Source: Oculina patagonica
Taxonomy: Eukaryota
Length of the DNA stretch: 64,000 nucleotides
Assembly (NCBI RefSeq): GCF_052425735.1
Contig: NC_135766.1
Location: 11,532,001-11,596,000, forward strand
Direction of reading: 5' to 3'
The notes beneath the pieces were generated by a model. It made no database searches and had not been told where the DNA came from. It worked only from the letters and a program-made list of their open reading frames with translations. Below, one piece after another: positions 1,641-64,000 of the stretch. Both the position numbers and the translations under genes were made by a program. Every line of letters begins with the position of its first letter. The first letter of the stretch is position 1.

Positions 1641-4600
1641 CCTTTATTTAATCACGATCTGTCTGGATCGACAAACTGCTGAAATTAAGTTTTTTAAATA
1701 TGGGGTCCATTCTCGCTTTTTTGCAAAACTGCTTGTGGTTGGTAGCGTTATTAAAGTAGCTTGACACAAAATTCCATAAGACTGCACCTCTGTGCTGGAT
1801 TGAGTTCTTTAAAAAGGACGTTGAAAATCGTGGGACAACCGCTTATTTGTGTCCTCTTAGGTTGTAGGGTCCCTGTCTCCACGTTACTAAATTGAAATCG
1901 TTTTAGGAATCTTTTCGATTACAACATTGTAAAACAGCTTAATAAGACTGAGTTTGTATAAATCGAGTATTGAGTCCCACTTAGTGATTTCCATCACCGT
2001 ATCCGATGGTGTGTCCCATGACAAGTTGAAGATAATAGGCCTTATTCTTATTCCCCGACGGCCCTGGGACGAGAGCCTTCTAAACATGAATGCGAGGCTA
2101 ATGCGGGGTACTTTGCTCGGAATTGCAAAGAAACATATGACAAATTGTGACTGGGTTGCCGAAAAACCTTAAAAATTATAAACGCTTTGAGGATCTTGAG
2201 CTAGGAGGTGATCTGCAGGCTAGAGGGATACCAGGGTCAATCAGAAAAATTAGAAGATCTGGTAGAACTGACCGAGAAGACTAACAAATTTCCTTGAAGT
2301 AGTTGAATCGGGGTAGTGCAAGTCAGTCATCGAGTCGCATGGCAATAACCCCAATCTGTTAATATTTGTTTTGATTGTACATCCGACTTGCCAGAGGCAA
2401 TAGACTTAACTTGGAGAGATTTGTATTGCTATTATTTAAAAAAAAGTAAGAATAAATATCTGAAGGCATGCTGCGTATTGACTTCATATTTTGATCGGCA
2501 TATGGACAAAAACAACTGAACGAAATGATGGTGCATTAATTATTTATAAATTCTTTTGCTGTTAAATGCTCTCATTGTTTAGTTAAAAGAATAGCTTTTA
2601 ATTCCACTGAACTGATTTCTTTCACACTCTGACTGCTATTTTTCTGCGCTGCTGCGAAACGTCTTTAAGAGAAATAGTAAATTTAATTAATGTTCTCGAA
2701 CGCCGGTTCAAGCAAACTGGCAAAATCACAAGATCTAAACTTCCAAATTCCTTTCGCCCCTAAATCATCGAATGTTCGAATAAAAGATAATTTTCTCAGC
2801 TCTGTCAAGTGAGAATATCGATAATTTAATGATCATTTAATATTCTTCCACGAAAATAGTCTGAAGCAGAACTGGATGTTTCAAATTAAAATCTCGCACG
2901 CACATTAAGATCGGAAAACTCACTAAATTACAAAGCAATTTACAAATTCGTTTTGGAGCTAACTACACGCAATTTTTGAGTAAAAGGCTAGATTTTCATT
3001 TGGCTCAGGTGATGCTGTTAATCGTTTCACGCTCATTTCATGATCTTGCAGTGAAAAAAGTTATCACAGCGCTAGCTTTTGTTTACGTTTGTTACTGAGA
3101 TATGTGTGCGTGATCAAATTTAATTTAGCATCAAGGAAGTTTAATCCCTCGCTTAAGTCGGATATACACTGAAAATAAACATAACAGATTAGCTGGAAAC
3201 ATAACCTGGTGTTGAAGTTTACTTCGCAAGTATTGCTGACTCGAAACCGTTCCCGACGATTCAGTGTAAATTTGTTAGCCTTCTTGGTCAGTTCTACCAG
3301 ATCTTCTAATTATTTCTGGTTGACACTGGTATCCCTCTAGCCCGCAGGTCACCGTCTAGCTCTAGATCCTCAAAGCGTTTACAATTTGTAAGGTTTTTCG
3401 GCAACCCAGTCGCAATTTTCCATTCGATTTCCATTTTTCTTTGCAATTTTGAGCAAAGTACCCCGCATGAGCCTCGCATTCATGTTCAGAAGGCTCTCGT
3501 CCCAGGGCCGTCGGGGAATACGAATAAGGCCTATTCTCGCTGCCCTGCGATGCAATGTTTCAAGTGCTTGTATGTGGTCAGAGTTGTTACAACCCCCCCC
3601 CCCCCCCCCCCCCCCAGACAATGATGCCATACGTAACAGACGGCAGTATGACTTTGAAATAAAGGTCGAGGAAAGCTCTTCTTTTCAAAAATGAACATTT
3701 TTTCAGCAGGTTTAACTTCTTGGAGAAATTTCTTTTCAGATCTTAAAGGTGTTTCGACCAGGTGAGCTCATGGTCTATGATGACACCCAGCAGCCTTGTG
3801 TGGTGCACCCATGAGATTGTAGTCGAGCCAATTGTGATGAGAGGATGTGGCCCAATGAAAGAACCTCTATGTAACAGCATTGCCTCGCATTTTGTAGAGT
3901 GTGGTGTAAGGGAGTTGGTAACACACCATTCGTTAAGTTCATTAAGTGCTTTGTTAAATATAAGAAGACTACAGGCTTCATCAATAGTTGAGCCGATACA
4001 GTAGACTGTTGTATCGTCAGCGTACAGATATAGGGTGCCCGAAGATACGGCGTCTGGCATGTCGTTGGTATATAGGCTGAGCAGGCACGGACCTAGGACT
4101 GATCCTTGTGGAATGCCACAGGTCACCTTCAGCTTTTTTGACTGGGTAGAGTTCACTACTGTAATCTGCGATCTTTGATTCAGGTAGTCCGTCAACTAAA
4201 ATAAGAGGTGTCCCTCGATCCCAAATCTATGCTTTAGTTTAGATAAAATAATTTTATGGGAAACACAGTCAAATGCCTTTTTGAAATCCACGAAGGCAGT
4301 AGCAACCACTAAATTTCTGTCAAGGGCTTGCCTCCAACATTCCGTGAGATGAACCAGCAATAGTTGGGTCGAGTGGTTCTTGCGGTAAGCCCATTGTTTG
4401 TCAGTGAGTAGACCGTTATCCATGACAAGTTCTACGATTCAAGAATTTTACTTGGTACACTGAGTAAGGAGATGGGTCGGTAATTACTCGTGTCAGTCGT
4501 GTCGTCCTTTTTGAAAACAGGGCATAGGTGTGCCGTCTTCAATTGGTCAAAAACATTGCCTTTCTCAACACTTAGCGAGTACAACTAGGTGAGCGGTGGA

Positions 4601-5837: not shown

Positions 5838-7515
5838 CTTCCTTTCCATCCTCCTCTGCCTTTTCCGCCCAAGAGTTAAAAATGCTCCTTTGCTGTTTTT
5901 GATAGAGCATGGCTTCTAAGAGATAATAAATCTTGATACGGTCATGATGTTCCACTGGAAGGAGAAGGTGGTCTGACTTCAAAGAAATGTTCAAGGCAAG
6001 TTCAAAGTTTGGCTTATCAAGTTCAAATCTGTTGAAAGCTGTGATGTATTCTTTGTCCAAAAGAGCTGAAATATCCTTCAGTTTGGACATGAAAAGGTTA
6101 CAAAACCTGTCTCTTGCCTTCTGGTAATCTTTCATGAAAACGGTGCTGTTACCGATGCTCCTTAAAAACTTTCGCATCAACGGATGAATGTCGTAGGAGA
6201 GGACCTTCGCCTTTGGGTCAACCGATACTACTATGCTATTTCGCAAGCCCTCCAGCTGTATAACAGCTTCCGACAAGTCCACCCCGAGGATGGTAGCGGC
6301 TGCTTCGGCAGAGAAAGGGCGGCCACATAACGACACTGAAACGGCACTCTCTTTTAGCCTTTCACTCGGCAGGAAGAAAAACATTTTTCTCAAGCAGTTC
6401 TCTTGTTCTTTGTCAATCCCTTCCTTTTTGTAATCAAATATTTCTCTCTCCTGTGTAACTTTCTCTGTCGGAGGTAATCCCGTTTCTGGGATTCCGATCA
6501 CTGCCTCTTCCTCTATGGTTTCAAGAAGCTTTTTGTCATCTGCTGTCTTCTGCCTTAAGATGGCGGCCATTCCGTTCAGGATAAGGGGATTCCCTCGGCA
6601 CATTTGTACCAACTTATCCCGACTTTGATCTTCTTCGAGGCTACGATTTCCATAGGTTTGAAGTAGTACACTTGAGACCGCTTTATCTAATGCTTTAACT
6701 TCATAATTATCGACAAGAGAATCACCGTGACGAATCGCAGTTCTCGAAGTCAACAAAATCTTCAACTTTGATTTTCCCTGAACACGTTGAAGTCTTCGGA
6801 GAAACGTCATAAAGTTGATATTCTGGTCCTTGGCAGCGTCTCCTTCTCCCCCCGCAAACTGGTCAACATTATCTAGAAGTAACAGCATGTCGCTTTCGTC
6901 GTTTTGCATCAGTTGTTGTATTTGACCGATGACTGGATTTGCTTCATAGCTTACGACCGTTCGCTCTGATTCCGTTAAAGCGTTTAGAACGTGGAAGTGA
7001 ACGCTTTTCATCTCAGTTATTCCTCTAAAGTCGACTTTAAATTTTCTGCCAGGCCACTTTGATAAAGTTTTAATGGCTAGCGTTGTCTTGCCTACCCCAC
7101 TTGATCCATACAAATTCACAACACTCGAACTGCCTGTTGTTAGCTTTGTCATAACTTTCTCTAAGTCGTGAACTCTGCCAGTTAGATCTTCTTTTGTCTT
7201 TACAGCCTTTCGCTGGCGTATTGTTTTGAAGCCTTGGATCTTTTCTTGGATGCTCTCCTTCTTGGTTGTTTTCGGAGTTGAAAACCTCTCTAACAAAGTT
7301 AGATTGTCCTCCGACACGAGACCTTGAGTGGCAAATAAATGCAAACAAGAATATAGATCTCGCTCTTGTTGATCTTCAAATTTGCCTTTAAAATTTCTTT
7401 TAATAGACGAAACGGCAACTTCGAGTTCTTCAGGGCTTAATTCACTTGAAACGTCTTTAAGAAGTTTGTCAAGATCAGGAGAAATCTCTCCTATCGCTGT
7501 TTCGAGCGACGCCAT
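5838..7515 (-). CDS. DED + NB-ARC-type STAND NTPase (NLR/APAF-like immune receptor), first coding exon; later exons not found in the window
   Basis: Starts at ATG 7515 (MASLETAIG). N-terminus is DED-like (LLKDVSSELSPEEL...GLVSEDNLTLLERF). Walker A GSSGVGKTT, Walker B LLLLDNVD, sensor ILLTSR, CRGNPLIL and an MHD-like YDIHPLMR are present. Ends at a GTAAG donor at 5837 (phase 1). Confidence 0.85.
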
Positions 7516-9824
7516 CTTCGCCAAATATATCATGATATGTGGCACCACAATGCAATAAAGTTATGCAGAAGTATAATCAGACATTGTTCATAAAATGATG
7601 AAAACATTCACGCCACCCTCGACCTACAGAGAGCTGTCTTATTTTCCGCATTTAATCTGTACTACAGCTGGTCACAAAGATAAGAAAATTTTAGCACCAA
7701 AGCCATCATCATCCACTCAATTAATTAACTGGTCATGATAAAGAGCATAACCGCGGCAATAATGTTTTGACAAGTGCGAAACACGCAACGCTCAAGGGCA
7801 TAACTGATGAAAATATCTACTAATGATAAAGATGAAATGTTTATTTGTCAAGAGCGTGCATGGGAGAAAGGAAAATATCTGAGTTCCCGATGGGAATCGA
7901 ACCCATGGTAAAAAATCTGTTGTTTTGAGACGACATTTCGGCATTATACTGACGCAAGCACAAGTACAAGCATAACAGCTCTCATTTCACCGTGAAAACG
8001 GCTTTGACGCAAGCATTAGCACAAGGATCAATTTTTTTTTCGTTTTCTTGAGCTTGTTCTTGCGTTCGTGTGAAAACAAAACACCGCATAAGCACAAGAA
8101 AATTGTTTACGTCTGACCATGTCTAGCCAATTACTGAGCACTCGCTTCAAACACCCCCGCGTCTGAGCATTTGAACAAATTAGCGGAGGCAGGACCTTCT
8201 TATTTGATGAAAAGTGCTTTGAAAAGAGTAAATAATAGAAGGTTAAAAATATTAAAATAAATCAGATGTTCATTCAGGGTAACATGGTCCTTTACATAAG
8301 TTTTGGGAAGTATTGAGTGACGATGAAACAGAAGAATTTAATCAAAATTAACGTTGTTAAATCTTATTTAAGAAGCCTGTTCATAAACGTCATACAGCGT
8401 CCGCTTGGTAAATTGTAAACTGGGAGTCATAAAACGGCTTTGTATACCAGTCAGCGAACTCTGCCTACCCTACCCTATAAGGGGTTCAGTGCAGGCGAGA
8501 GACTCCATGATAACTTGCATGCGCATGTAACCTATCCTGGATTCTTGCACTTCTTCCTTCTGGACTCAATATATATTGATATATTTATTTTCCTTTCGGA
8601 CTGCTATGTACTCCAATTCAATTACGAAAAGGAAAAAAGTTTACTGAAGATCTAAGAACACAGTAAAGAAACCTAAATATAAGATTATCCGATTGCAGCT
8701 TTTGCTATGCAACCATGACATTTTACTGTCTGAGTAATTCGAAATTCCATAACATTTCACTGGCGACGGAATCGGAGTCGTAATCGGAAGCGCAGTGTTA
8801 CGATCTAGTGAGCATCAAACAGACGGAGTCGTAAACAAAGTTCAGCTTTCGCTTATGACTTCGTCGCCTATGATCCAGTGAAAACTAGATTGTTGGAGTC
8901 GCAAGCAGAAAGGAAGCACTCGGAGGGTGTGAGAACCAGCATCATGGTTGGTTTGTTTTTCGCTCTTGTCTGCGACTCTGACAATCTAGTTTTCACTAAT
9001 ATATAAGCGACGGAGCCATAAGAGGAATCGAGAGAAAATGGAAACGTTCTGTTTCTTTAGACTCTGATCCCGTAGAGCTTATGAAGATTTATGAGTAAAA
9101 AACGTTTCGAGGGTAAGATTACATCGATGACAGACTTCACATGTCGTAATATGGAAAATTCGAGGCACTTTTTTTCGCTTGATTGACAGTTTCTTTGTTC
9201 TCACGGTGGCTCGCATGACTGCGATTTCTCGGAATTTGTGTTCAACTTCTCGGAAATCATGACTTTTTTTGCAAGTCAAAATTACATCATTATTTGTGCA
9301 CGGTCGTCCCATTTTGTTTAACTTAGCCCTGTTATCACAAAACAACAGGTGATTGCAAGGGTCTTTGGACAGCACATAAATAATTTTATTAACTATGACG
9401 ATTTTTTTTTCAAACTTCGTAAAAGGCAATGTTACATTGGTCTTTATACTGATAAATTTATGCTGACTTATTTAACCATATTCTTCGCAACCGCTTCACT
9501 CGCTTAAAAGCTACCAAATACATAAATAATTTATTTCTTCCTAATAGACGAATACTAACTTTTACAGGACCTAGTCGTCAACCGTATAATTTTAGATAAA
9601 GATAAAGCTGGTTTCCGCACTCTAGCGATCAAAAAAGGCATTTAGCGCCAATGATATATAACTGACTAGGAATCAGCTAGCATTGTACATAAGCACAAAT
9701 AAAATGTCCAGCTAATTACGTCTGCGTCGTTTATAAACACGACCATAGTCTAATTATTGGAAGCTGTCGCTGTTTTCTTAAGTTCAGACATGCTTATGCT
9801 TATGCGCTAGTTCAAAATCAGCTT

Positions 9825-11936: not shown

Positions 11937-13149
11937 AAATAGGTACATTGCTTCCGCCGGAAATAGCTACCAATTCCAAGAAAGGACGAACCTTGTTTAC
12001 GCCGGATGTACAAGGACTGAGCCAAAAACAAACAACTAACCACGAGCTTCTGTTTGCAAAATCTATAACCGTCTATGTTTCACGTTATGCGTCAGATTGC
12101 CATTGCATTTTGATTGTTGTAATCGTCATTTTTTGGATTTTAGATTTGTAAATGTATCCACAAGAGAAATAAAACAATTTACGTTTTTAATGTAAGATAG
12201 CTGCGCGTTGATATGAAGATTCGTTACGAAATCATGCTCTAAAATGATTATTTAAGGAGTTTGACTGTTTGGAGTTGTCATTTGATGGCATCTCCGTTTT
12301 TGGTCCACTTCAATCTCGGAATTTTACGTTAGCATTATGCCTGATCCATGTTTAGTACGTTACTTGTATTATCTATTAAGGCCCTTTATGTCTGTAAACA
12401 TCAGGTTTCAGATTCTCAATATACATACACTTTTTTTTTTTTTCATTTATTTTCTTTACTTTATTATTATGTATTTTTCCGTGTATTGGGATGTTCCATC
12501 TTCCTGGTTTTATTGACGGCTGAAATTTAATGCCATTTTCGTTTCATTGCTTGCATGATTAACAGTTTCTTTGTTCTCTGGTTACCTGCATGACAACAGA
12601 TGTTTCTCGGAATTTGCATTCAACTTCTCGGAAACTATAGCAGAAAATTCTTTTTGCGAGATTTTAAAATCCTGTTTGTAATCCAAACTTGCATAATTAA
12701 TAATCTACTGGTAACATAGGATTTTGTGCTACCTCTTTCCATTTATAATAATGATACTTGATAATTCTGCGCGGTCGTCCAGTTTGCAATCGCATATTAT
12801 ACAGACATAATAAGACTCCATAACAGACAACTGCGTGTTTGCACCAATTAGTCTTAAAGTAAAAATAACATCGTTTAGTATACTACTATCTACGGATCCT
12901 AGCTGTCATTGTATAATTAAAACATGGCCATGGTTTTTACGGCAAACAGTAAAAGCATATTGTTAGCAGAAAAAGATACAAGCTTAAATTAAAAGCAGTG
13001 TTGAGAGGACAACATGAAATATCGACTATTGCAATGATTTGAGCATGTTTTTCTTTGTAAATCACAACATATACATAAGCATAAGCTAAAAAATAACGAG
13101 ATTTCGTGTTGGACATACTAATTAATAATGCTATAGTAAAAATCAGCGT

Positions 13150-30600: not shown

Positions 30601-32841
30601 AAAACAAAGGCGTTGCTGACTAGGGTCCTTTGAAGGTGGTACATGTACCAATATACATCATCCTATAACTCAGTACAAGCTCGAGCAATTTGAATTGAAA
30701 GTCGCAAGTTGCGACGAGCAAACTGTCAATCAAAATCGGAACATTGCGCCACAACATCGTAAGGTTCCCATCAAAAGAAGATCCGGCTTGACTGTTATGT
30801 TTGAATCTAAAATAACTACTGTTAGAGTTATTTCTGTACATTCTACTGGTACAAGTAGAGTTATTTTAAAAAGTAAGAAAAGAATTGTCAAAAAGAGTTA
30901 AGGTAGTGATGAAAATGAATTTGAGCCATGCCCACCAAACAAGATTTTGGCACCATTTGGGCGTTTCTTTCAGTTTGGATGATCACTCTGCTAATTTAAT
31001 ATGAGATAACAAACTGGTCAATCTCTGGGGCCTTAACATAATGACTTTACTAGAGACACCCTAGTGCAACCGAATATGGTTCCTTTTTATGTACTGATCA
31101 AATTGAAATTTCAACATCCCAACTGCCCCAGGACAGGCATCTAAACTTAATTTTAAAAAGTGGTTTTTGAAATTCCCATACCCTGGGCCAGAAACGATGT
31201 TAAAACATTAGCCCGGGGTCATATCACAAACACAAATACCCTCACCCCAAGACATGCATGGCAACAATGAGGAACAGATACTGACTGGATTCCCTATCGC
31301 TGTTTTACAAACCAATAGAAAGTATGACCTTGATGGGTTTTCGTGAAAGTAAAATTTTATTTTTTTAAGCTAAAAAAGAAGTGACTTAGTTGGGACAATA
31401 CTTCCAAGGTCCAATATTCAGAAAATATTGGACTTGTGAAAGTTCACACAAAAAACACAAAATTACCAGTTAAGCTAATTTATATGCTAAATATCAAGAT
31501 GGCATCAATGGCACCACATCCAGCCAAATTTGTTCAAATTCCCTTTTCCATAGGGAGGGGGGTGAATAGGGGTACACAAATCCGCCGATCGTGCTATTTT
31601 TTGGCTAAATCCGTCAATCCGTTACCATTTTCATTCAATTCCAAATCCGCATTTCTTGTAAACTTTGTGTCGTATAGTTTCTCTTCAACGGACAGTAAAT
31701 GTTGTTTTCATGCCAATTTTTCAAGAAGATTCTTTTCATTGCTTGTTTTTGCAACAATTCCACCAACATACCGACGATGGCCGGATCCGGACGTCGTTTA
31801 GTATCCATGATAGGAACTTCCTGACATAAAAAGTCCGAAATCGGCTCCAAAATTCTCAGCTTACCCGCAATCCATTGTATTTTCGAAATAAGCGAATCCG
31901 CTCAATATTTTGCAAAAATCCACAATCCGTGCGCTTTTTAAGGTTAAGGTCATTGCCCTGTTTTGCATTGCGCATCCCTACTGCGCAGAATTTTACACGT
32001 AATTAGCGCGCGCGCGTGAGCACATCAACAAAATGGCGGCTTTTTTCTATGCGGCTTAGTCCTCGAGAGAAGTAAATTGTCACTTTCCCTTAAACGAGCC
32101 TGGTGACCTATCAATTTTTTCTCATATTTTGGGTGTAGCGATCAAATTCTTTCTGTAAAATGAAAACAGATCAATTCATGTGTTTGAAAAATAAAAAAGT
32201 GTACTTTGCCAGTACTCGCAGAGGAATTATAAAGGAATTATATGGAATATACATGGTCGTCCTGCTCCTAAACGAATCTGGTGACCCCCCTTTTTTATTT
32301 CAAAATTTAAGTTCCCTTGAAGTAATAAACCAGTAGGCGAAGTTTGGTTAAAAATCTATGTTCAGTTTTATTTCGGGGCAATGACCTTAAATCCGTCGAG
32401 CCGCAAACCTTTTCACCCAACCCTATATGATGTCAAATTCCCTACCCCCAAAAAACATTACAGTAACTGCCTATGTCAAATTCACGTCTATCAGAGAACA
32501 TCAACGAGTCAAATGCCAGCTTACGCCGAAGGGGAAATTATCAATATCTCTAAGTACTTACTGTACTACAAATTATGAAAAACAATTAGCGAGGGATTAC
32601 GGTTCTTCAATCAGAAAGGACTTCAGAAAGGTAAAACGGAAAAATAGTACATAATGAAATGATACCTAACCAAAATTTTCATTTAGATCACCTAAGCAGA
32701 AGGCTAAAGAAAAAAGTAAAGAACCCTGAATCTTACCAGTGTGTCCGGATGCGCATAAGTAACTGCAGGAGGACGAATCCAATGCTCATCTTCGACTTCT
32801 AGTCTTGGTATTTTCGAAGGAATGGCCTCTTCCTCGTCCAT
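27650..32841 (-). CDS. GT-B (GT4/Glycos_transf_1-like) glycosyltransferase-fold protein, paralog A; exons 32841-32737 and 28892-27650, 3' end uncertain
   Basis: Exon 1 MDEEEAIPSK...HPDTL ends at a GTAAG donor (phase 0). Exon 2 follows ttgcag (phase 0) and contains RELAIQLAK, DLAIMPSGEQGFGMMALAALSAGLPILV and YSWEKQ; it ends at a GTATG donor (phase 1). Confidence 0.8.
29157..30291. mobile_element. Kolobok-like non-autonomous element (TTAA TSD) in intron 1
   Basis: ttaa-aggtcaaatgaacagaaattt ... aaatttctgttcatttgacct-ttaa. Confidence 0.8.
31948..32386. mobile_element. Kolobok-like MITE (TTAA TSD)
   Basis: ttaa-ggtcattgccc ... gggcaatgacc-ttaa. Confidence 0.75.
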
Positions 32842-35288
32842 GTTACCAAGCTTTATACAGCTGATCCGTCTCTACATCTTGTAGTGTTTTCACAAATTTC
32901 TCATCTGTACCCAGACGTCTTTTCTGTTGTTCAACATGTAGCTAAAAGACCGAAAAAAGTGAAAACTATTCTGCGTGAGACGCGTACGACTCTGACACTT
33001 GCTTCGCCAAGCAGTTTTTTCAGCCACCCGGCAATTTCGTGCCCAGGGTCTTCTCCGTTTTAAAAAGAAATGAACTGATATTGTCCTGGCAAGGCTCCTG
33101 GCAACAATCCCTGGCAACATGTGCAAAGTGCGTGGAAATTATTCAAATAGGACCTTCAAAAGTGTGGAAAATTCGACTCAGATATTAAAGGAAATGTGGT
33201 CTTTTTGAGACGACATTTTCGCTTCATACTGACGGCTTCTTAATCTTAATAGAATATATATTCCAAAAGATTACATATCTCGCCTTACCGGTTTTGCTTT
33301 TCGCCGAGCTGGTTATGGGTTCGATTCCTCACCTGTGAACCATTTATATAAAAGATTGAGGTCTTTGAGGTCTTATTTATAAAGCCATAATATCAACTAA
33401 AAAATTGAATTTAGTGTTGCATTGAATCAAGAGATATTGCAAATTTCACGTGTAAAAAATTGCCTCCAGTTACTATAGACTGTACACAGTCCCCCTTTTT
33501 TCCAACACACAAAACACGAGAGAAACGGCGAGCGAAGCGTGCGTGAAGCTGGAGTCCAGTTTTCCCGCGATTCTTTTCCCGCATTCAACAATCGAAGAAA
33601 AATACGAACAAAGAGAGGGCTGTGAACAGTCTACGGGAACCTTATTCTTGTCGATTCTTTCTTATTTTCGTGCGTATTAGATTTCGCGATTTTCATGTTT
33701 TGGAAAAAAAAATGGCGAAAATTCATACTCGCGAAAATTAAGAGACAGATTCTGAATTTTTCGAGAATCGTCCGACAGAAAGGGAATTTCAATTTTATTT
33801 TTATTTGCCCCAAATAAACCTTTTAGTAAACTATTTTCGAAAATGACATTAAACGGTTCAGTTTCCTTTAACTTTTTTTAAAATTAAGAAAAGTTAAAAA
33901 TTCGAAAAGCAAATCCACCGTGGCGACCATTTTGGATGAAATTTAAGGTGTTTTCACGACACTCGTGTATACATACCAAACAACTACTCAGTATACCCTT
34001 TACACAGCTGTTTAGGTATCTCTTGAAGTTTATTTTCAGATATATTTTGTTTGAAAATATCACGTTTAAGAAAAGTTACGATCTTCGACAACCGACCCAT
34101 TTCTAGAACATAAACGACAGGGCGAATATTAGCTAACTTCAAGATTGTCAAAAGCGGTCTGGTATATTGTTTTGGAGTTAAAAAACAACACCAAATTGAA
34201 GCTAAACCTTTCTTCTCTCTGTCTGAAAAATATTACTGGTGGCCCGTAAAAACTGTTCCGCTGAGAGAATTAACCATAAAGGCTGTTTTTCGCTCTGACT
34301 CTCTCTATTTATAGTAACTATTTGTGAATTTGTCCCGAAATATAATTCTTCCTAGCGGCTTTTGTACCGTAAAGATCCCGATTAATGCCACGAAAGAACT
34401 TGAACGTTTAAACAGGTTTTAAAATTCAGTGTGCATCGGTCTTGGTAGTTGCCCTAGTATGAAAGAACAGCTTTCGTTGCGGGATTAGTAATTAGGAAGA
34501 TGTACGTTTCGGTCTCGACATTCTGTCTGGATGTGAACGGCGTGGTATAAATTAAATTAAAGGCAAATCACGCTTCTCATAGATAGAACAAAATAAAACA
34601 TAATCCGACCCAATTTACTTAAAACATGTTCATGCTACAAAATCCTTACTTGTGAGAGCGTGATATGATGGATAAATTTATAGAAAAGAGCCACAACTTA
34701 TCATGAAACAGGAAATATTATCTGTTTGTTTATTTCCGCTTCAAGTCCTTCAATAACTTGAGAATTAGTTAAGGCATTTGATACTGCGAAGCCGTCCTGC
34801 TTTCTTTTCACATCGGTCAAAAGAATGATCATTTATGCTAAAAAAAGTTGAATCGATCGATTTTATATGAAGAAAAAGAAAGTGACAAAATCCTTCGATA
34901 CAACGATTTTCCGTAAACATATTCATCACGCAAAATTTGTCATTCACAAACATCGTCTTCATTTCCTCGACTTTAATTTAAATACTTCATTTTCGGACAG
35001 ATGATTATAAAGCTTTAACACGTACCTTAATTCTTCCGCAGTGTATAAAATGAAAAGGACCCGCTTCTCGCCGATTATTAATTAGAGAGAAGGGACTTTT
35101 ACACCTAAAAGTTTTTTGTGTTGCGTGACAAAAACGCCAAAATACATGCATAGTTAATTAGATTCAGGAAAACAGTACGCAATATTTTTACGCTGTGGTC
35201 ACATTTCGCAGAATTTTTACTCTTTTTTGTGATCTACTTGTGAATGTTTTTTAACAACAAATACTTTTAGATATTATTTCTCGCCATT

Positions 35289-55349: not shown

Positions 55350-58300
55350 AGTACAATCTCAGCACGATTTTGAACTGAATTGACGGAAGTTAATAAATTC
55401 TTGACAAACAAGTGCTGTGATAAATGAAACTAGCTATAACAAAACAAAAAGCCTAAAACTCTCAAATACTAGACTACTAAAACTGACTCGAGGTGAAAAC
55501 ACCACTCAGGAAATATTTAGCCAGGGAGCTCACTCGCCATTGGCGGTTTTCAGTGAGTCCCTGAAGATAATAATAAATTACAAAAAATAATACCCAATTT
55601 ACAATCCTAGTTATAAGACCTCGATAAAATATTTTTATAAAACCCACTCAAAAGTCCCAAATTATTCAAAAAAAGGTTACAATTGCAATAGAAAAATTAT
55701 AAGGAACAAACTTCACTAATTTTAGAATTACTTGACAAAACAAGTACTCAAAAAAATCTACTGGTGTAAATTTGCAGAAACTAAGATTAGAACCTGTAAT
55801 AAAACAGCAAGCCTGACACAAAAATTCTCAAATAAGACCCGACAAAACTACACTCGAGAAACTAATAAACAAACAATTACGTGACAAAACGCACTCTTAA
55901 ATAATCTACTCGGGTGTAAATTTCCAAACTATGGAACTGGCCAAAAACAACCAGCCAAGAAAAATCCAATGAATACAAAAATTAGAAAGCAAATACTTGG
56001 CTACTAAAAACAGAACCCAACAAAAACGCTACTCGGGAATTAAACGGCAAAATTCACAACAAATAGAAAGCGGAAAAATTGCCAATAAATTTCGAACAAA
56101 TACAATTCCAAAAAATTACCGTATGAAACTGACACTTGCAAATAACTTTGAATGAAAACAAACGAGCTGAGATTGTAACTATCAACAGCTTTGCCTTTTG
56201 CGAAGTTGCAAAAAAAGTTTCCGTTCTCAGGTAGCCGGCCGGCGCCGGCTAAGGCGGGAAAATGGTTGGCAGCCGGCGTGTCTTTCCCGCCATACAAGCA
56301 AGCCAAAGCTACATGAATTTTACAGTGCTCAACTTCGAATATAAGATCAAAGACAAGACAAAGAATATATGTAAACAACTGTTCATTATTTAATTGTAAA
56401 ACAACAAACATTCCTAGCTTACAATAAACATTTGTAAACGTCATTATTTCTGGAAATCCAATCTCAAAATCCGATCTAAACGAACGATTAAAAATCTGCC
56501 GACAGACACAATTTCCTTCGCCTACAGGCCATACTGCTTAGAACCGAAAATACGGTACAAATACACTGGACTCACCGCTTCTAAAGCTTCGTCGAAGCTT
56601 CCCAGATCTTCCTCCCGACGTAACCGAGTAAAACTTCGAATAAAATCGTTCATAACTCGCCCACTTTCAACAAAAACATCACAAAACCGCTCTCCCTTCT
56701 CATCGAACAACATGGACGCGCGTTCTGATCGAAAGTGAAATGCGCGCGCAAGTTCTTATGGGATTTTTGACCGCTGGCCTCTTGCATTGCTCGAAGTTCA
56801 AAAAAATCTCGTCTTAATATCAATTAATTAATTATTCCTTGTGGAGGGGGTGGGGGTGGGGAGCACCTGACCGTACCCCTAGGTAAAACCTGGAGCACAT
56901 CTACGTTACTTTCATATGAAGATCTCAAACGTATATATTTGTTTCAGAAAACCCTTTGCTCTCCTTGTGGTACTACTCAACGTAATTTACACCAAACGCA
57001 TGCGCAGATTAGTCTACGTTGTTTTCTGGAACTATCATGAACATCGCTTGTATTGCGTGTCTGCGGTAGGCTTCCTGCAGACTTCTTGGCGCCAAGTAAA
57101 AACCGCAAATTAATTAAATTAGATTTGGAGACTTTCACAGCGCTTTCGTAATTAGGTATGCAAAAACTTGCACCGGGATTTTCGGCGTGAACACCTGATA
57201 ACCAGGAAACAAATATCCTAGCTGTACTGCGTTTTAAAAAACCTGTCGAAAAATATGTTTTTTGATTAGATTTGTTTCTTTAGGTTTTGAGAATCGTCTT
57301 TCGTGCAGTCTAAACCGTAACTTAATTAAATTAAACAAATGTCATCGATGCCGCCGTAAAACAAACAAAAAACAAAAGTTTCATGTTATCGCATTTTCAA
57401 GGAAGACAAAAGTATTTTGTTACAAACGAACAAAAGTGTCGTGTTATGTTTGCAAAGATTAGCGTAAGGAACACCTGGGAAAGAATACTAGTAGCCTGTG
57501 AACAGTTTTTCCGAACGTAAAGTAAAGCAAATAAACACGAACATATATAAAACATCATACTTTCAATTGTTCCATATTGCATTCTGCACTTACCAAATCA
57601 TCGAGATTTTCTTTTCTTCTTTCCTCACTATTACGGACACCTTTGGGACCACGATTTGGTGTCCGCAATAGAAAAGTCCGCAGTAGCGGGAGTTATTTTC
57701 AGTAATTCTCATTCGCTGGGACTTAAACTCCTGTCCGTAATAACGGGGTGTCCGCAAGGCGGGAGTTGACTGTAGTCGGAAAGCTGGGTTCTTATATTCA
57801 TCTCACGCTGGCATGTTTCTTCTCCCGCCTGGGTACAACTACTACATAGGGCGAGGAAAGGAAAGATAGGAGGCGTAAGTCACTTTATAGAGGCTTTATT
57901 TCCAACATGTACTACAGATCAGCGGCGAGAGCTTACGAACGAGAATAAAGAACTGATTCTCATCGCGAATCGATACTAGTGTGTTGCCTCAAAAACAAAC
58001 TATGAAATAGTTAAAATATTTACATTTGTTATAAATAGATACATGTATATATAAAGAGAGAAATAATACATAAGCTATATACAATATACGTACAATAAAA
58101 TTTGTACAAGAGAAACTTTTACTTCTTTAAGAAGATAACCTAAAATGTAAATTAATGTTAATTCTTATGGCTTTGCCTAAAATAAAAACACATTGTTCCC
58201 TTAAACTCGTTCACGTATTTCTTTTGGTAGTTGACTTGAAAATGTGATAATACAGCGGGTTGTAAAATTGCGGCTTCCTTCACTTTTAACTACATATTTT

Positions 58301-58755
58301 GGGCGGAACTAAGTTACGCTGACAACTGTGGATTCAGTGAGGGGAATGTCAGCGCTTATAGTTGAACATTTATTTACATGCATGAACTACAAAAATTGGG
58401 ACAGACACCGGATTTTTAAGTGGTTATAAATGTCAATAATGGATCGGAGGATTTACAGATCCGATCCTTAATGACGATTCACGTTTTTAACACATGAACA
58501 GTTCGAGCAAAACGGTGTGATTATAAAATCACTCTTCCTGCCACTAAACACTGACGGCCAGGTTTCTTTTGAAGTGCAAGACAAAACCGCGAGAAAAGGC
58601 CATACAGCATGTTTTACTTGCTTTATCATAAGACCGTCTGAGTGAGTATACGTATAAAAAGACGATCAATTACAATCTACCATTACTAACTTTTAGCTCA
58701 TTTTCCTATTTACCTAAATAAGCCAGTTTACAAGAAAGATCTGTGAAAGATGGAC

Positions 58756-61700
58756 TTAACAGTTATGGTCCACCAAACAAAACTTTTCCGCAAGATCTTT
58801 ACGATCCACTAAAGGATGACACAAGGCGTCATGTAAAACTTGGAAAGTTGCACCTGTTGCACCTTTAGCTTGTTTCCATTTCAATAACATTTTAAATGCC
58901 TTTTCACAGCATTCCTCATTATCTTTATGAATTGCATCTAGCGCTGCTTCATCGTTTTCCAATAACCGACGCCCAAACACTTTCCATTCCTTGACGACTT
59001 CCTTTGCCAGTCTTTCCAGGTCATCATTTTCAGGTGTGCCTCCTTTAACTGAAACCAAAAGAACACAATTAAAGTCCTACGTTATAAAATTTGAGTTGAC
59101 ATGATTTGCTAAGGAGGTCAAGGAGTGAGGGATAGCAAAAGGTTTTTTTTGTGAGCGTAATTGAATATCTCTTGGCGTGAACTGGCATACGTGAAATGAT
59201 TGGGGTTTTTTATGCACTCGCGAAACGTCATCTGTTAAATTGGCTTTGAGTAGTGGTTTACCGTAATTATTATTTTACGTCGAAAAAAAAATTACTTAAG
59301 TAAATTTATCTGGTCGAATGACTGAGAACAATCACGATGCCACTGCCCAGGAGTATTGCAGGGTCGTTCAGTTCACCAGGTAAGACTACCAATGAGCAGT
59401 CGCGTTTTGGACAATGCACGTGCAGTGCATACAATTAACCTTTTGCCAGGCGCACCGTGTTGCATGTGGAACATGAGTGAAGAATGCTTGGGTTTAGACG
59501 TTTTCTTCATATCATCCCATGAGACGTAATATTTAGTTAACTGGAAATACACGTAATCTCTGTTGAGCTTGTTAAATAAATCTCTGCCGCAGCAGCCATT
59601 TTAACAAGGGAAAATTATACTGGGGACATCACGTTTACCTGGGGTGGTGTAACCACGGATACTGCTACTGCTACTATTACTATTTTTGTTGTTGTTTATA
59701 TTACCTGCACGGTGCGCAGACGTGTGTTTGGAACGTTTTGTGCAGGTACATGATGGCGATTCTCTCTTTCGTTTTACAGAAGAACCTCAAAAGGAAAACA
59801 GGAGTTAATATAAGAGACAACTGAAATTCTCAGTTTTTATAGAAAAACATGAAACTTGAGGTGATTTGAGGAGCAAGAGTGATTAGTTTCACTCGTGCTG
59901 TCAGCGTCCGTTGGCGTGCTAGCGTTGGTAATACCTCAGGCTATTTAGCTTGTGGGCAGGGTCTAAACGGTTTCCTTTTGCGACTTATGCGTACGTCATC
60001 GCACGTGCTTTCTGCGTGCTCTGTCTTTCTTTACAGCATTCCCCTTCCCTCCCCTCTCTGAGGCAGCGTTCTCTCCCCGGTTCCGGGGATTATAGGTTTT
60101 ATTTTACTGTGTTTATATATTTTTTGACATTGTGATTGTTAGCACACTCACTAGTATTTCCACTGATCCTTGCAAGCCTACGGGGATGATGGCCGGGTAA
60201 AGGTTGAGGGCAGACCAATGGGGTGTTACATGTATGTTCTACTACGCTGGGCTGGTTTTGCAATCGTAGCCACTAAGCTTAAAATTCATGTCCAGTGCAG
60301 AAAACTGTACCAACGTGTATTTAATAAAATCACCAAAGTTGGGCGATTTCTCTATCAAAAATGTTGGCTCTACATCTTGGATTCAGATTATTTTAAATCA
60401 ATGACAAAATTTACCTTGATTATGTGTAGTCTGCGCACTGATTTCGTTTGACGATTTGGTACTTGAGCCTGAAGGTAATTGCTTTTGCTTTGCAGTAGAA
60501 TGTGTACAGTTGTTAGAAGTTCCTAAAAGAATTGGAAAACAATATTAGGACAAAGCTGACATCATTAGACAGAAGAACATGATGCGGTAAAGAAAATAAA
60601 CAGCCCGTTAAGCTGACTTGTGGAATAGAGTTCTTTGAATTTCAATTTTCCGAGGTCATTTAAAATTTGACTCAGACTAATGACTTATTGACTTGTTTAA
60701 CTCATAAAAACTTTATTACTTAGCTTAGCACTATAAGGAGGGGGCTTTGCGTCTTTTCATTTTCCAAAGTTTTGCCTTCAAGAGTGTCCTTAAGCCTCAT
60801 TAAACTTACTAGTGGAATAAACATTTTTTAGAGCCTTCAAGTCCACGTAGAGTTTTTCCTCCTCAGGGCGGGATTGTTGTAGTAAGCCCCACTGAAAAAG
60901 CATTGACTACTTGGCCTGGAAAATGAATTGAATCCATGTTGGACTAAACAGTGCACGTTTCTTGGACTTAAAACACATTTGTACCATGTTCTCGTCTAAA
61001 ATTAAACCAGCAGCGTTAACAGCAATTTTCACAGATTCAGTTGATGTATAACATGCTGCAATTAAGATGATCACATGTTATGTACATGTTAATAGCCAGC
61101 TCACATGGGGGTGGAACGTTTACTTAATGCAAACGAGGGTACATGTAATTGTGTTCCTGTTCACTGCAGCATATTAGTTAAAAATCCACAAAATATGAAA
61201 AAAATCATACCACAAACCACAGTGAACATTTCTTTAATCAGATCCTCACAAGGTTTCTCCCAGCTGTACTTTTCATCATAATGCGAGCGCAGTAGTGCAG
61301 CCTGCTCGAGCCTTGTCTTTCTGTCTGTTTCTCGCACCTTCTTGATTGCCTTGGCCCACACCTTGGCATCATCAGAATCCACAGTGGATTTCCATGATGT
61401 ACCAGTCTCGACCTCTCTTAGAGCTTCACCACACTCTGAATCTTCGTGCACCAGGATAGGCAGACCAGCAGATAAGGCTGCAAGAGCCATTCCAAATCCC
61501 TGTTTACTTGAGGGCATGATGGCAAGGTCTGCTTTACAGAACAAGCGTTTCAAGTCTTCTACACATCTTGGAAAGCTTTGAATGGTTAATTGACGTTGTG
61601 CAACACCACAGTGATAGAATTTTTCAGCAAACTGCACTTGTTTTGCTTTTGACACACAAACAAACAGAAGGACATATGATTTGTCTTTCAACTCTGCCAC

Positions 61701-62426
61701 TGCATTAGCAGCAGTGTGAAGTCCCTCTTCGTAGAAATTCTCAGGGTCAAAACCACCACTTATCAACACACGAAACTTTCTTCTGTCAGCAATAGCATGG
61801 CTTACATCAGAAAGGTCACTGAGTATACCTGGAGGAAGTTCAAACACTTTCTTCCTGTAGAAACGGAGAGACGCAGAAAGTTCATCAGCCATCTTGGGTC
61901 CGATGGCAACTGGAATATCAGCCATTCGACTAAGTTGGACAGTAGTCATTATTTGAGAACTGCTGTTAGTGATGCTGGCCAATTTCTCAAGGCAGTGTTG
62001 GCCTTCAAAGAGCATCTCTTCCAGCGGGTTAGAAGCAACAAAAACACTCTTGCAATGGTGACGTTCCTTGAACAATTGTGCAATTTTTCCAAGCCTCTCA
62101 CCTACACCAACTACAATGTCAGTCGTAAGGTCTTGTGGTGGGAAGATCAACCAATCAACAGGGTCATCAAAACCTGGCTGTTCCTTTGCTTCAACAATGG
62201 TAATACCATAACTGGCAGCTTCTCTCTTGTCCTTTTCACTACACGAATCTTCTTCTGGAACAAACAAAGTGACTCTCATCCAAGGGATTTTTGCCAATTT
62301 AATGGCAAAGTCAATGGCAAAAGTTGATTGGGATGACGAGTAGGGAACAGCAACGTGCAGTGGACCGCTGGAGGAAAAACTTCCACTTTTGTCTACTGTA
62401 CATTTTGAGCTGTTATCAGAGCAACA
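58756..62426 (-). CDS. GT4-fold + DEATH-domain fusion protein, paralog B; exons 62426-61211, 60468-60415 and 59048-58756, first exon not located
   Basis: The GT exon is homologous to 27650-28892 with the same intron phases. A 54-nt phase-1/phase-1 linker exon (GSSTKSSNEISAQTTHNQ) follows. The terminal exon LERLAKEVVKEWKVFGRRLL...AFKMLLKWKQ...ATFQVLHDALCHPLVDRKDLAE is a DEATH fold. Confidence 0.82.
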
Positions 62427-64000
62427 CTGCAATAGCAAAGCAGAATGTTTTAGAGCAAAACCGACTGTGCATTAATACTTTTTGTATATGTACCATGAGT
62501 GGTACTATTTTACTATATAAACTGCTTAACTAATAGATTCCATTTTGCAAACAAATTATACAAGTTACAAATTATTTGAGATATCTCTTTCTTCATATTT
62601 TAACCAAATATGGTCGAGTAGATGATGTCATCATTTTGCTTATTTGCATATTTTATAAACTTGAATATCTCTGGAAAGAAACGAGATATTTGAAAACAGT
62701 AAACAGAGTTTTTTCTTCTCACACAGACTTCTTGCTCATGTTTTAAAACGCTTTATACAATAACCGAGCTAGTATTGCGTCTGTTGTGATTGGGTGATGC
62801 CTGTCATCTATTAGAGTACAGACGCACAGATTCAGTTGCACAAAGCAATCCGTCACTTACATGCCAATTGATATTTGGAAAGACCTTCCATCTTCTTTGA
62901 AAGACTTAAGTGTGTTAGCATTTCCCAAGCAAATAAAACGTTACCTCCTGTCAGAACAAAAACTAAACTGATTCTCCACTAAACTAAGTCTGTAAATTCG
63001 TAAGTCCTCTTCCCTATTGTTACTTATTAATCACCTGCTTTTTATACTATTGATAACAGTAATTGTACGGGGAGCTAACTTAAAAACCTACCGGTTCATT
63101 TAGCTCCCCAGCTCAATACTAAATTAACTACAAATTCCTGTAATACCTTATTTCTATTTAATTAAGAATACGAACACAATGTTCTGTAAACTTTAATATG
63201 AGCGAAATAAAATTATTATTATTCAAGAAATCATTGAAATCTGTATGAAAGTGTTTGACTGATGTTGTACAGTTGGAAGACGCTGCGGGAAACAAATGAA
63301 TGGGGGTTGAACACTTTGGTTAATGCTTACAGATTTGAGCAACTTTTCAAACCGGAATAAAGGTTAGTTTTTTCATAACTGACTTTCAATATACCATTTT
63401 TCTGCTTATTTAATCGGTTTAATAACAGAGCTTCGTGGTTACGGAAACTTTATATATCATGAAGTCACTTTTGAAAATGTACGTTGCTAAGCAAATGAAA
63501 CGTCAAGTTTAGTAAAATGCATTATTTTGTCATGTTTATAACTGCTGTTTGTTTTATATTTTAATTTTTTTATTAAAAAAACTGCTTCAAAAATTGCTGC
63601 TTCAAAATAATCTGTCCTCCTCAACAAAAAAATACACAATTATAGCGGAGCTCCTAAGCGTAGCACCATAACCATGAAAGAAGGAACACTATCGAAATGA
63701 GTTTTCATGGTCAACATGGATAGCGGCATGGTTCGCGGGCGCGTACGTACGGCGTACATACCTAGTACGGAGTCGCGCAACATGGCGGCCATAGTTTGAT
63801 GGTAGAAAGAGTGAAGCAAGAAGGCCGTATAAAGGCGGCCTTTGAAATTTAAAGAGGTTTGAAAAGAAAAACAAGAAGCAATGAAACAAAATGTGGCTGA
63901 AAATTACGTGTAGAAAGTAATCGACCGCCAAAAAAGTGGACATTGAGAGCCATAATCGATCGATGACTTTCGTGTCTATCTGTAAAGCCAGCATCGTACA

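Follow-up and report, generated by a model that had tools for sequence, protein, structure and literature searches.

Here we describe a gene of the coral Oculina patagonica in which an exon for a glycosyltransferase-like module of the GT4-conflict family, here called GT4b, is spliced through a 108-nt exon (e108) and an 81-nt exon (e81) to an exon for a C-terminal Death domain. The gene lies on the minus strand of the chromosome-scale contig NC_135766.1 (C9, or G000:C9) of the 529-Mb genome, inside a cluster of paralogous GT4-conflict genes. The window, that is, the whole stretch of DNA that was analysed, comprises 64,000 nucleotides (positions 11532001-11596000 of the contig). At its 5' end GT4b is in turn spliced to an exon located 3.4 kb upstream and outside the window (exon B), and the protein is probably a three-domain GT4-GT4-Death polypeptide.

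An earlier reading of this DNA, referred to below as the original prediction, had placed a glycosyltransferase fold in an open reading frame (ORF) at 61.2-62.4 kb and a Death domain in an ORF at 58.8-59.0 kb, and both were borne out by the Pfam scan. The 425-amino-acid ORF at 61161-62438 (-) matched PF20706 (GT4-conflict) at window:61164-62438:- with an E-value of 5.8e-44 and 151 bits (cut-off 26), the match spanning nearly the full model (positions 15-384 of 385). The 100-amino-acid ORF at 58756-59058 (-) matched PF00531 (Death) at window:58759-59058:- with an E-value of 4.1e-9 and 36.9 bits (cut-off 22.6) over model positions 2-81 of 86, and phmmer matched the Death exon to the RIPK1 death domain at 3.6e-4. 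The features of this part of the gene are the following:

61211..62426, minus strand: GT4b exon, 1216 nt, with a phase-0 acceptor and a phase-1 donor, encoding the 405-amino-acid GT4-conflict (GT-B) module.
GT4b splice sites, minus strand: acceptor ttgcag/TGTTGC and donor TTTGTG/gtatga; contigs of four runs cover the exon.
61479..61502, minus strand: degenerate EX7E motif QGFGM-ALA, with Gln for the first Glu (61502-61500) and Ala for the second (61481-61479).
60415..60522, minus strand: 108-nt linker exon (e108), phase 1 to 1, encoding GTSNNCTHSTAKQKQLPSGSSTKSSNEISAQTTHNQ; joints in runs X1-X4.
59705..59785, minus strand: 81-nt basic linker exon (e81), phase 1 to 1, encoding GSSVKRKRESPSCTCTKRSKHTSAHRA; isoelectric point 11.
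58756..59048, minus strand: Death-domain exon, phase-1 acceptor, TAA stop at 58758-58756.
58374..58755, minus strand: 3' untranslated region (UTR), ending at the first AATAAA; a second AATAAA is found at 57900.
62427..64000, minus strand: 3' part of the 3.4-kb intron between exon B and GT4b; contig depth is close to zero at 62423-62571, and loose ends occur at 62428.

The splicing of these exons was followed in Logan contigs of four public runs (X1-X4, from three studies) placed on positions 58400-62842, clear of interspersed repeats. The runs are only presumed to be RNA; however, coverage tracked the exons, most intron bins were empty and the joints had GT..AG ends. In all four runs the coverage runs on down to 58400, in the 3' UTR. 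The joint 60521->61210 (cut +1), by which 61211 is spliced to 60522, was present in the four runs, as was the joint 59783->60413 (cut +2), by which 60415 is spliced to 59785. Since the acceptor at 60522 is in use, the small exon extends over 108 nt (60522-60415), and the 54-nt exon originally proposed corresponds to its 3' half. As for the two junctions put forward in that proposal, the donor after 61211 is canonical and used but the acceptor at 60468 is replaced by 60522 in the four runs; similarly, 60415 and 59048 are both canonical sites but they are not joined directly, 60415 being linked to 59785 in every run. The three-exon model had thus missed e81 (59785-59705), which has a canonical acceptor and donor, as well as a further exon spliced upstream of 62426.

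A contig of run X3, 449 nt long and with zero mismatches, is made up of 97 nt of GT4b, e108, e81 and 163 nt of the Death exon (58886-59048), so that GT4b and the Death exon occur together on one assembled molecule. That 59705 is joined to 59048 follows from the lengths of these pieces adding up, with no separate joint row. With these corrections, the four exons have an open frame of 565 codons, which terminates at the TAA at 58758-58756. The central claim of a glycosyltransferase spliced in frame to a C-terminal Death domain, with no NTPase (nucleoside triphosphatase) between them, is thus upheld by this contig and by the lack of any NTPase match in the exons, and the two exons do not belong to separate genes. 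In runs X1 and X2, a contig over the Death exon carries 14 mismatches and its loose end matches the 81-nt-type exons of a paralogue at C9:11.46 Mb; it represents the same type of join in a different gene. Other contigs of X1 and X2 (709 and 790 nt) joined 62428 back to 61326 within GT4b, going back 1103 nt. This joint is non-canonical, would shift the frame by 2 nt and was found in only two runs of one study; such a signature may come from a circular molecule, from an artefact of reverse transcription or assembly, or from most of the GT4b exon being duplicated in tandem.

Position 62426 is a canonical phase-0 acceptor in use, and therefore the stretch first described is not the whole gene. Upstream of this acceptor, the frame of the GT4b ORF meets a stop at 16 codons (12 codons before a TTG), and no in-frame ATG is found in the ORF before residue 53. 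Contigs of X3 and X4 continue from 62426 into TAGAAGAGAAGAAACAAGAGGACATAGAAA, a 30-mer that is unique in the genome (C9:11597878-11597907) and that forms the 3' end of exon B, an 82-codon acidic exon at window-equivalent 66120-65876 (positions above 64,000 continue the numbering of the window) with the donor AAG/GTAAGA. One kb upstream of exon B there is a second GT4-conflict exon, GT4a (window-equivalent 68196-67056; Pfam 2.6e-44, 152 bits), which is 61% identical to GT4b and shares its acceptor phase (0) and donor phase (1). Collinearity was found between the 3 kb that precede GT4a and the 4 kb that precede LOC144665715, an annotated GT4 gene within the window, and it takes in the first exon of the latter (32841-32737). 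In the copy that precedes GT4a, the 5' UTR and the ATG are nearly the same as in LOC144665715, and a 32-codon exon (71063-70968) is open and ends in a phase-0 GT donor. The gene thus seems to be equipped with a promoter and a start exon of its own, both copied from the GT4 gene next to it.

When the seven exons are joined, they give a clean 1059-amino-acid ORF in which all sites are canonical (AG/../GT). The full gene would accordingly encode about 1059 amino acids, arranged as a 32-amino-acid acidic start, GT4a, an acidic disordered linker, GT4b, the basic linkers and the Death domain. The modelled protein has an acidic N-terminus and no hydrophobic segment, and is predicted to lack an NTPase, a signal peptide and a membrane segment. 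No Pfam match to an NTPase was obtained in any exon of the model, and apart from the two GT4 exons the minus strand contains no ORF of more than 110 amino acids between 58.7 and 71.1 kb. The inferred upstream exons, examined by Pfam and as ORFs to 71.1 kb, therefore do not add the NACHT or NB-ARC domain that the original prediction had named as a possible refutation. Roc GTPase matches were confined to a separate ROCO gene further upstream. A conserved block at window-equivalent 69256-69375 was considered as a coding exon and ruled out, given that it has stops in all frames in O. patagonica and in the second coral species described below.

Two further observations were made in this upstream region. 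The 5' UTR, ATG and first codons at window-equivalent 70968-71190 (G000:C9:11602968-11603190) are about 95-97% identical to window positions 32737-32960 of LOC144665715, while the rest of the first exon and the introns are far more diverged, which suggests that gene conversion took place recently or that the promoter and start region have been selectively conserved. In addition, the intron upstream of GT4b contains two interspersed repeats of about 360-380 bp (62843-63224 and 63640-64000). Both have at least 40 scored copies with 93-98% identity across all chromosomes, and they resemble a young family of the short interspersed nuclear element (SINE) or miniature inverted-repeat transposable element (MITE) type.

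A collinear locus was found in another coral assembly (ENA ERZ25067872, L013/L014), in which the six downstream exons, their phases and the stop are all kept. At the amino acid level the two loci are 71% identical in GT4a, 60% in exon B, 69% in GT4b, 73% in e81 and 74% in the Death exon, stop included; e108 is also conserved and is present there in two copies (L013:11633-11737 and 12305-12409). Four codons ahead of the coding part of the orthologous exon B there is an in-frame stop, so that translation cannot start at the 5' end of this exon in that species. For the same reason MQMVVTLAYCLCFYDLLV, an extension of the exon B ORF in O. patagonica considered as a signal-peptide-like start, was ruled out. 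The only exon B acceptor common to both species is accag/AGAGCC, in phase 1 and compatible with the phase-1 donor of GT4a. With synonymous divergence (dS) of about 0.3 between the two species, the ratio of nonsynonymous to synonymous divergence (dN/dS) was 0.42 for GT4a, 0.58 for exon B, 0.48 for GT4b, 0.42 for e108 and 0.35 for the Death exon, while the value of 0.89 for e81 comes from 26 codons only. Overall, the gene is real, transcribed and conserved.

Some differences among copies were also recorded. GT4a of O. patagonica, read from window-equivalent 68196, is without some 24 codons (PNGASRCMGKIMKQCSNGSYSSYS) that are present just after the acceptor in the ortholog (L013:3066-3145) and in most paralogues. 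The N-terminal strand and loop of GT4b are degenerate (PLHVAVPYSSSQSTF), intact relatives having KVTLLxxEWxSxxGGLST. The paralogue at C9:11.46 Mb has several exons of the 108-nt and 81-nt types upstream of its Death exon (L008:4188-4292, 9034-9138, 3882-3959, 6276-6335 and 8731-8808), and the phase 1-1 linker exons look like freely amplifiable spacers. The product of e81 itself looks like a bipartite nuclear-localisation signal (NLS).

The AlphaFold2 (AF2) model of GT4b (mean predicted local distance difference test, pLDDT, 87; predicted template-modelling score, pTM, 0.83) shows alternating strands and helices in two halves, which is a GT-B fold. Its top Foldseek matches were MshA (1.2e-15), sucrose-phosphate synthase, BshA and PimA, with E-values from 1e-15 to 1e-11. 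Retaining GT4 enzymes carry the EX7E motif, whose two glutamates, in the C-terminal domain, contact the sugar donor. A pairwise alignment with MshA (3c4q) and two multiple alignments (A1 and A3) showed that this motif is absent from both modules, GT4b having KQGFGM-ALAA and GT4a EQGFEMIALAA at the place where MshA has NESFGLVAMEA, WaaG QEAAGIVLLEA and the C-terminal GT4 of the neighbouring ROCO gene TEGFGLIVLEA. It is also missing in 58 of the 60 nearest relatives, both orthologs included (alignment A3), and therefore its loss is old and clade-wide. Given that both glutamates are replaced (by Gln and Ala) and that the sequences have been under constraint since, GT4a and GT4b are probably binding or regulatory modules rather than enzymes.

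With regard to the Death exon, its AF2 model consists of six helices (pLDDT 82) and gives template-modelling (TM) scores of 0.79-0.82 to the death domains of p84/THOC1, RIPK1 (0.82) and TRADD, the range being 0.74-0.82 when the ankyrin death domain is included. All of its top 29 structural matches are death domains; the Foldseek E-values, only 6e-3 or weaker, are explained by the small size of the domain. At least 87 related Death exons are present in the genome, each as one full-length exon, in clusters on C4, C5, C2 and C9. Related Death domains of other corals have the same start boundary, (V/I)K-x-G-x-P, are C-terminal and often follow a basic linker; their N-terminal partners are HEPN_DZIP3, PNP_UDP_1, trypsin-like, ankyrin, ZU5 and WD40 modules, and GT4 is absent from the ten longest relatives. 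The Arg of an LGRRL motif is nearly invariant in the family.

Some of the Death-exon clusters are tight (C4:49.7-50.2 Mb, C5:30.1-30.7 Mb and C2:2.47-2.69 Mb). High-scoring GT4-conflict exons number at least 61 in the genome, and 17 scored copies among them form a run at C9:1.57-2.19 Mb. Of the paralogues of the Death exon, the closest (G000:C9:11462195-11462479; L008:1695-1979) is the one at C9:11.46 Mb, with 93% amino acid identity and a 3' UTR with 93% DNA identity. Its transcription is seen in X1 and X2, in which an 81-nt-type exon is spliced to its Death exon, and no GT4 was found within 8 kb upstream of it. More generally, among L008-L012, the five paralogues most similar to the Death exon described here, none has a GT4 within the 10 kb covered, and no Pfam domain was found in their flanking ORFs.

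As an architecture, GT4 plus Death without an NTPase is not new. Kaur, Iyer, Burroughs & Aravind reported that Acropora digitifera has a lineage-specific expansion of GT4, with more than 500 paralogues and a variety of fusions, and discussed the pattern of an effector or sensor plus a death-fold adaptor (Kaur et al., 2021, eLife 10:e70394, PMC8195603). Their Figure 6-source data 1 lists SIG+GT4+DEATH for the A. digitifera proteins XP_015748513.1 and XP_015748512.1 (LOC107328287; 524 and 526 amino acids) and DEATH+GT4 for Branchiostoma floridae XP_002594622.1 (506 amino acids), and also tabulates GT4+DEATH+sGTP+sGTP, GT4+GT4+GT4+IG, GT4+NACHT and sGTP+GT4+TM; the string GT4+GT4+DEATH is not in it (Kaur et al., 2021). 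The gene described here, with GT4-conflict and Death in one polypeptide without an NTPase (one contig, in frame), belongs to the GT4+DEATH class, and it has no NACHT, NB-ARC or Roc-COR module in its model that would place it with the NLR, STAND or ROCO proteins. As in the Acropora proteins, a coral GT4-conflict module is followed by a C-terminal Death domain, as part of the coral GT4 expansion. Compared by architecture only, those proteins have one GT4 and a predicted signal peptide, whereas here there are probably two GT4 modules and an acidic N-terminus. The other catalogued combinations show GT4 shuffled with Death, GTPase and NACHT modules and also arranged in tandem, as is probable here, and the sGTP+GT4+TM type corresponds to the ROCO neighbour of the gene. 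The class of GT4 plus Death without an NTPase was therefore already catalogued for corals in 2021, and the gene is a further member of a known immune-type family, in which the tandem EX7E-less GT4 modules and the NLS-like basic linker are modest points of interest.

Within the genome, at least two further, paralogous loci (G000:C4:50069313-50074317 and C4:49929965-49934967; L016 and L017) have a comparable order, a phase-1 Death exon lying 3.6 kb downstream of a GT4 exon with a phase-1 donor and on the same strand. Unlike here, their GT4 has its own ATG (397 amino acids), keeps EX7E (TEGFGLAALEA) and is only about 41% identical to the one here; linker exons were not detected at these two loci. 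They are near-duplicates of each other and candidate two-exon GT4-Death genes, whose enzyme may be active. Other coral effector-Death proteins share the Death cassette with 39-48% identity and differ in their N-terminal modules, namely HEPN_DZIP3-Death (P0179), PNP_UDP_1-Death (P0251/P0196), Trypsin_2-Death (P0197) and Ank-Death (P0172). Among solved structures, MshA (3c48/3c4q), BshA and WaaG (2iv7) share the GT-B fold with its two Rossmann-like halves (Foldseek E-values from 1e-15 to 1e-13), whereas they have the EX7E Glu where Gln and Ala are found here, and their sequence identity is only 12-16%. The original prediction had also drawn a parallel with the arginine-GlcNAc transferases NleB/SseK of enteric bacteria, which link a glycosyltransferase functionally to death domains as well. 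Those enzymes, however, are secreted effectors with another fold, GT-A, which act in trans on host proteins, whereas GT4b is a GT-B protein without the catalytic glutamates, and the parallel is an analogy only.

The explanation that we favour, and which we hold to be fairly probable, is that of a seven-exon GT4-GT4-Death gene without an NTPase, encoding an adaptor-type protein whose GT4 modules would probably be non-catalytic. Such a product would combine an effector or sensor with an adaptor, as has been proposed for proteins of metazoan and bacterial conflict systems. Its Death domain would dock it onto Death-bearing scaffolds of the STAND, ROCO or TRADD-N type by homotypic death-fold assembly, and the EX7E-less GT4 modules would bind a nucleotide-sugar, a glycan or a partner protein as a sensor, regulator or decoy rather than transfer sugar. 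The adaptor or decoy role suggested in the original prediction is thus consistent with the loss of both glutamates, while its two-domain layout gives way to the probable tandem one. Several points weigh against this explanation. The four runs are presumed, not known, to be RNA; at this locus the join of e81 to the Death exon comes from a single assembled contig; and the joins of exon 1 to GT4a and of GT4a to exon B are inferred from exon order, phases, splice sites and the paralogous promoter and first exon. Many members of the clade retain a Glu one residue ahead of the lost first Glu, so that some residual activity of GT4a is possible. Moreover, no annotated protein for the gene was found in the protein collections searched at 223-709 and 625-1988 amino acids. 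Among proteins of 223-709 amino acids the best match to GT4b was 72% identical, and none of the best 120 had a Death domain; the Death region of P0123, a 1136-amino-acid relative, returned only P0123 itself among those of 625-1988 amino acids, and the Death exon gave no match above 65% identity among protein representatives. Exon B matched only an unspliced genomic ORF on a DNA-type Logan contig, and a 775-amino-acid ORF at 51.4-53.8 kb, used as a query to reach nearby public gene calls, had nothing on record. Public annotation neither confirms nor contradicts the gene model.

It is doubtful, though it deserves serious attention, that two genes are involved, with GT4a standing alone and the Death transcript starting at exon B or just upstream of it and being translated from an internal Met (GMETVDQ...), which would give a GT4-Death protein of about 590 amino acids. 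Among the upstream joins only that of exon B to GT4b was seen in RNA, the Met of GMET(V/A)DQ is conserved in the ortholog, the clade is dominated by stand-alone GT4 genes, published GT4+DEATH proteins have about 525 amino acids, and two other loci of the genome resemble simple GT4-Death genes. However, GT4a has a conserved phase-1 donor and lacks the short AQPD-type terminal exon found in stand-alone paralogues, and the phase-1 acceptor of exon B is conserved. Upstream of the Met, exon B is also conserved as coding sequence (length difference a multiple of three, 68% amino acid identity, dN/dS 0.58), and the interval from GT4a to exon B showed no conserved block resembling a promoter. Less probable, and in our opinion unlikely, is a pseudo-enzyme receptor in which two dead tandem GT4 modules would bind either a nucleotide-sugar or a glycan of microbial or symbiont origin and release the Death domain to nucleate a death-fold assembly without an NTPase switch, possibly in the nucleus, a site that the basic linker makes conceivable.

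The locus might also be a transcribed, decaying duplicate, that is, a functionless pseudogene put together by the shuffling of GT4 and Death exons. The lack of a match among the annotated proteins searched, the lost catalytic motif, the N-terminal codons missing from GT4a in comparison with the ortholog and the frame-breaking back-join inside GT4b in X1 and X2 would agree with this; nevertheless, none of the seven exons is interrupted and their splice sites are canonical, the exon set is likewise open in the second species at the divergence given above with dN/dS well below 1, and the loss of EX7E is old and clade-wide, not recent decay, which makes it quite improbable. We consider it very improbable that the upstream ROCO gene (GT4-Roc-COR-GT4-TM) gives a longer transcript of which these exons form the 3' portion, with an NTPase encoded upstream. 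That gene is on the same strand and its C-terminal GT4 exon, about 10 kb upstream of GT4a, has a phase-1 donor, but this does not directly fit the phase-0 acceptor of GT4a. Furthermore, GT4a has its own ATG exon, with a 5' UTR about 95-97% identical to the first exon of the annotated gene, and in the other coral no GT4 or Roc ORF precedes the orthologous GT4a within 10 kb. Least credible of all is an active glycosyltransferase tethered to Death that would glycosylate partner death domains in the manner of NleB/SseK. The nearly invariant Arg of LGRRL occupies what we take, from the FADD sequence, to be the position targeted by NleB, and the TRADD and RIPK1 death domains, which are GlcNAcylated, are among the best structural matches. 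Against this, neither GT4a nor GT4b retains either of the EX7E glutamates, the fold is GT-B and not the GT-A of NleB, and the Arg is a general structural feature of death domains.

Given that the architecture of the favoured GT4-GT4-Death gene is of an already catalogued type, the current picture is unchanged, and the corrected exon model and probable tandem structure mainly serve annotation. It must be noted, nevertheless, that the immune-type families of corals are hugely expanded by the shuffling of a few modules and almost none of them has been tested; in this regard, the gene is a clean transcribed example of a GT4-to-Death protein. The contrast within one genome between the GT4 modules described here, without catalytic glutamates, and the C4 GT4-Death paralogues that retain them is useful for the question of whether coral GT4 modules act as enzymes or by binding. 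Should the pseudo-enzyme receptor be true, this gene, with a tandem layout absent from the 2021 catalogue, would provide corals with an NTPase-free route from sugar sensing to death-fold signalling.

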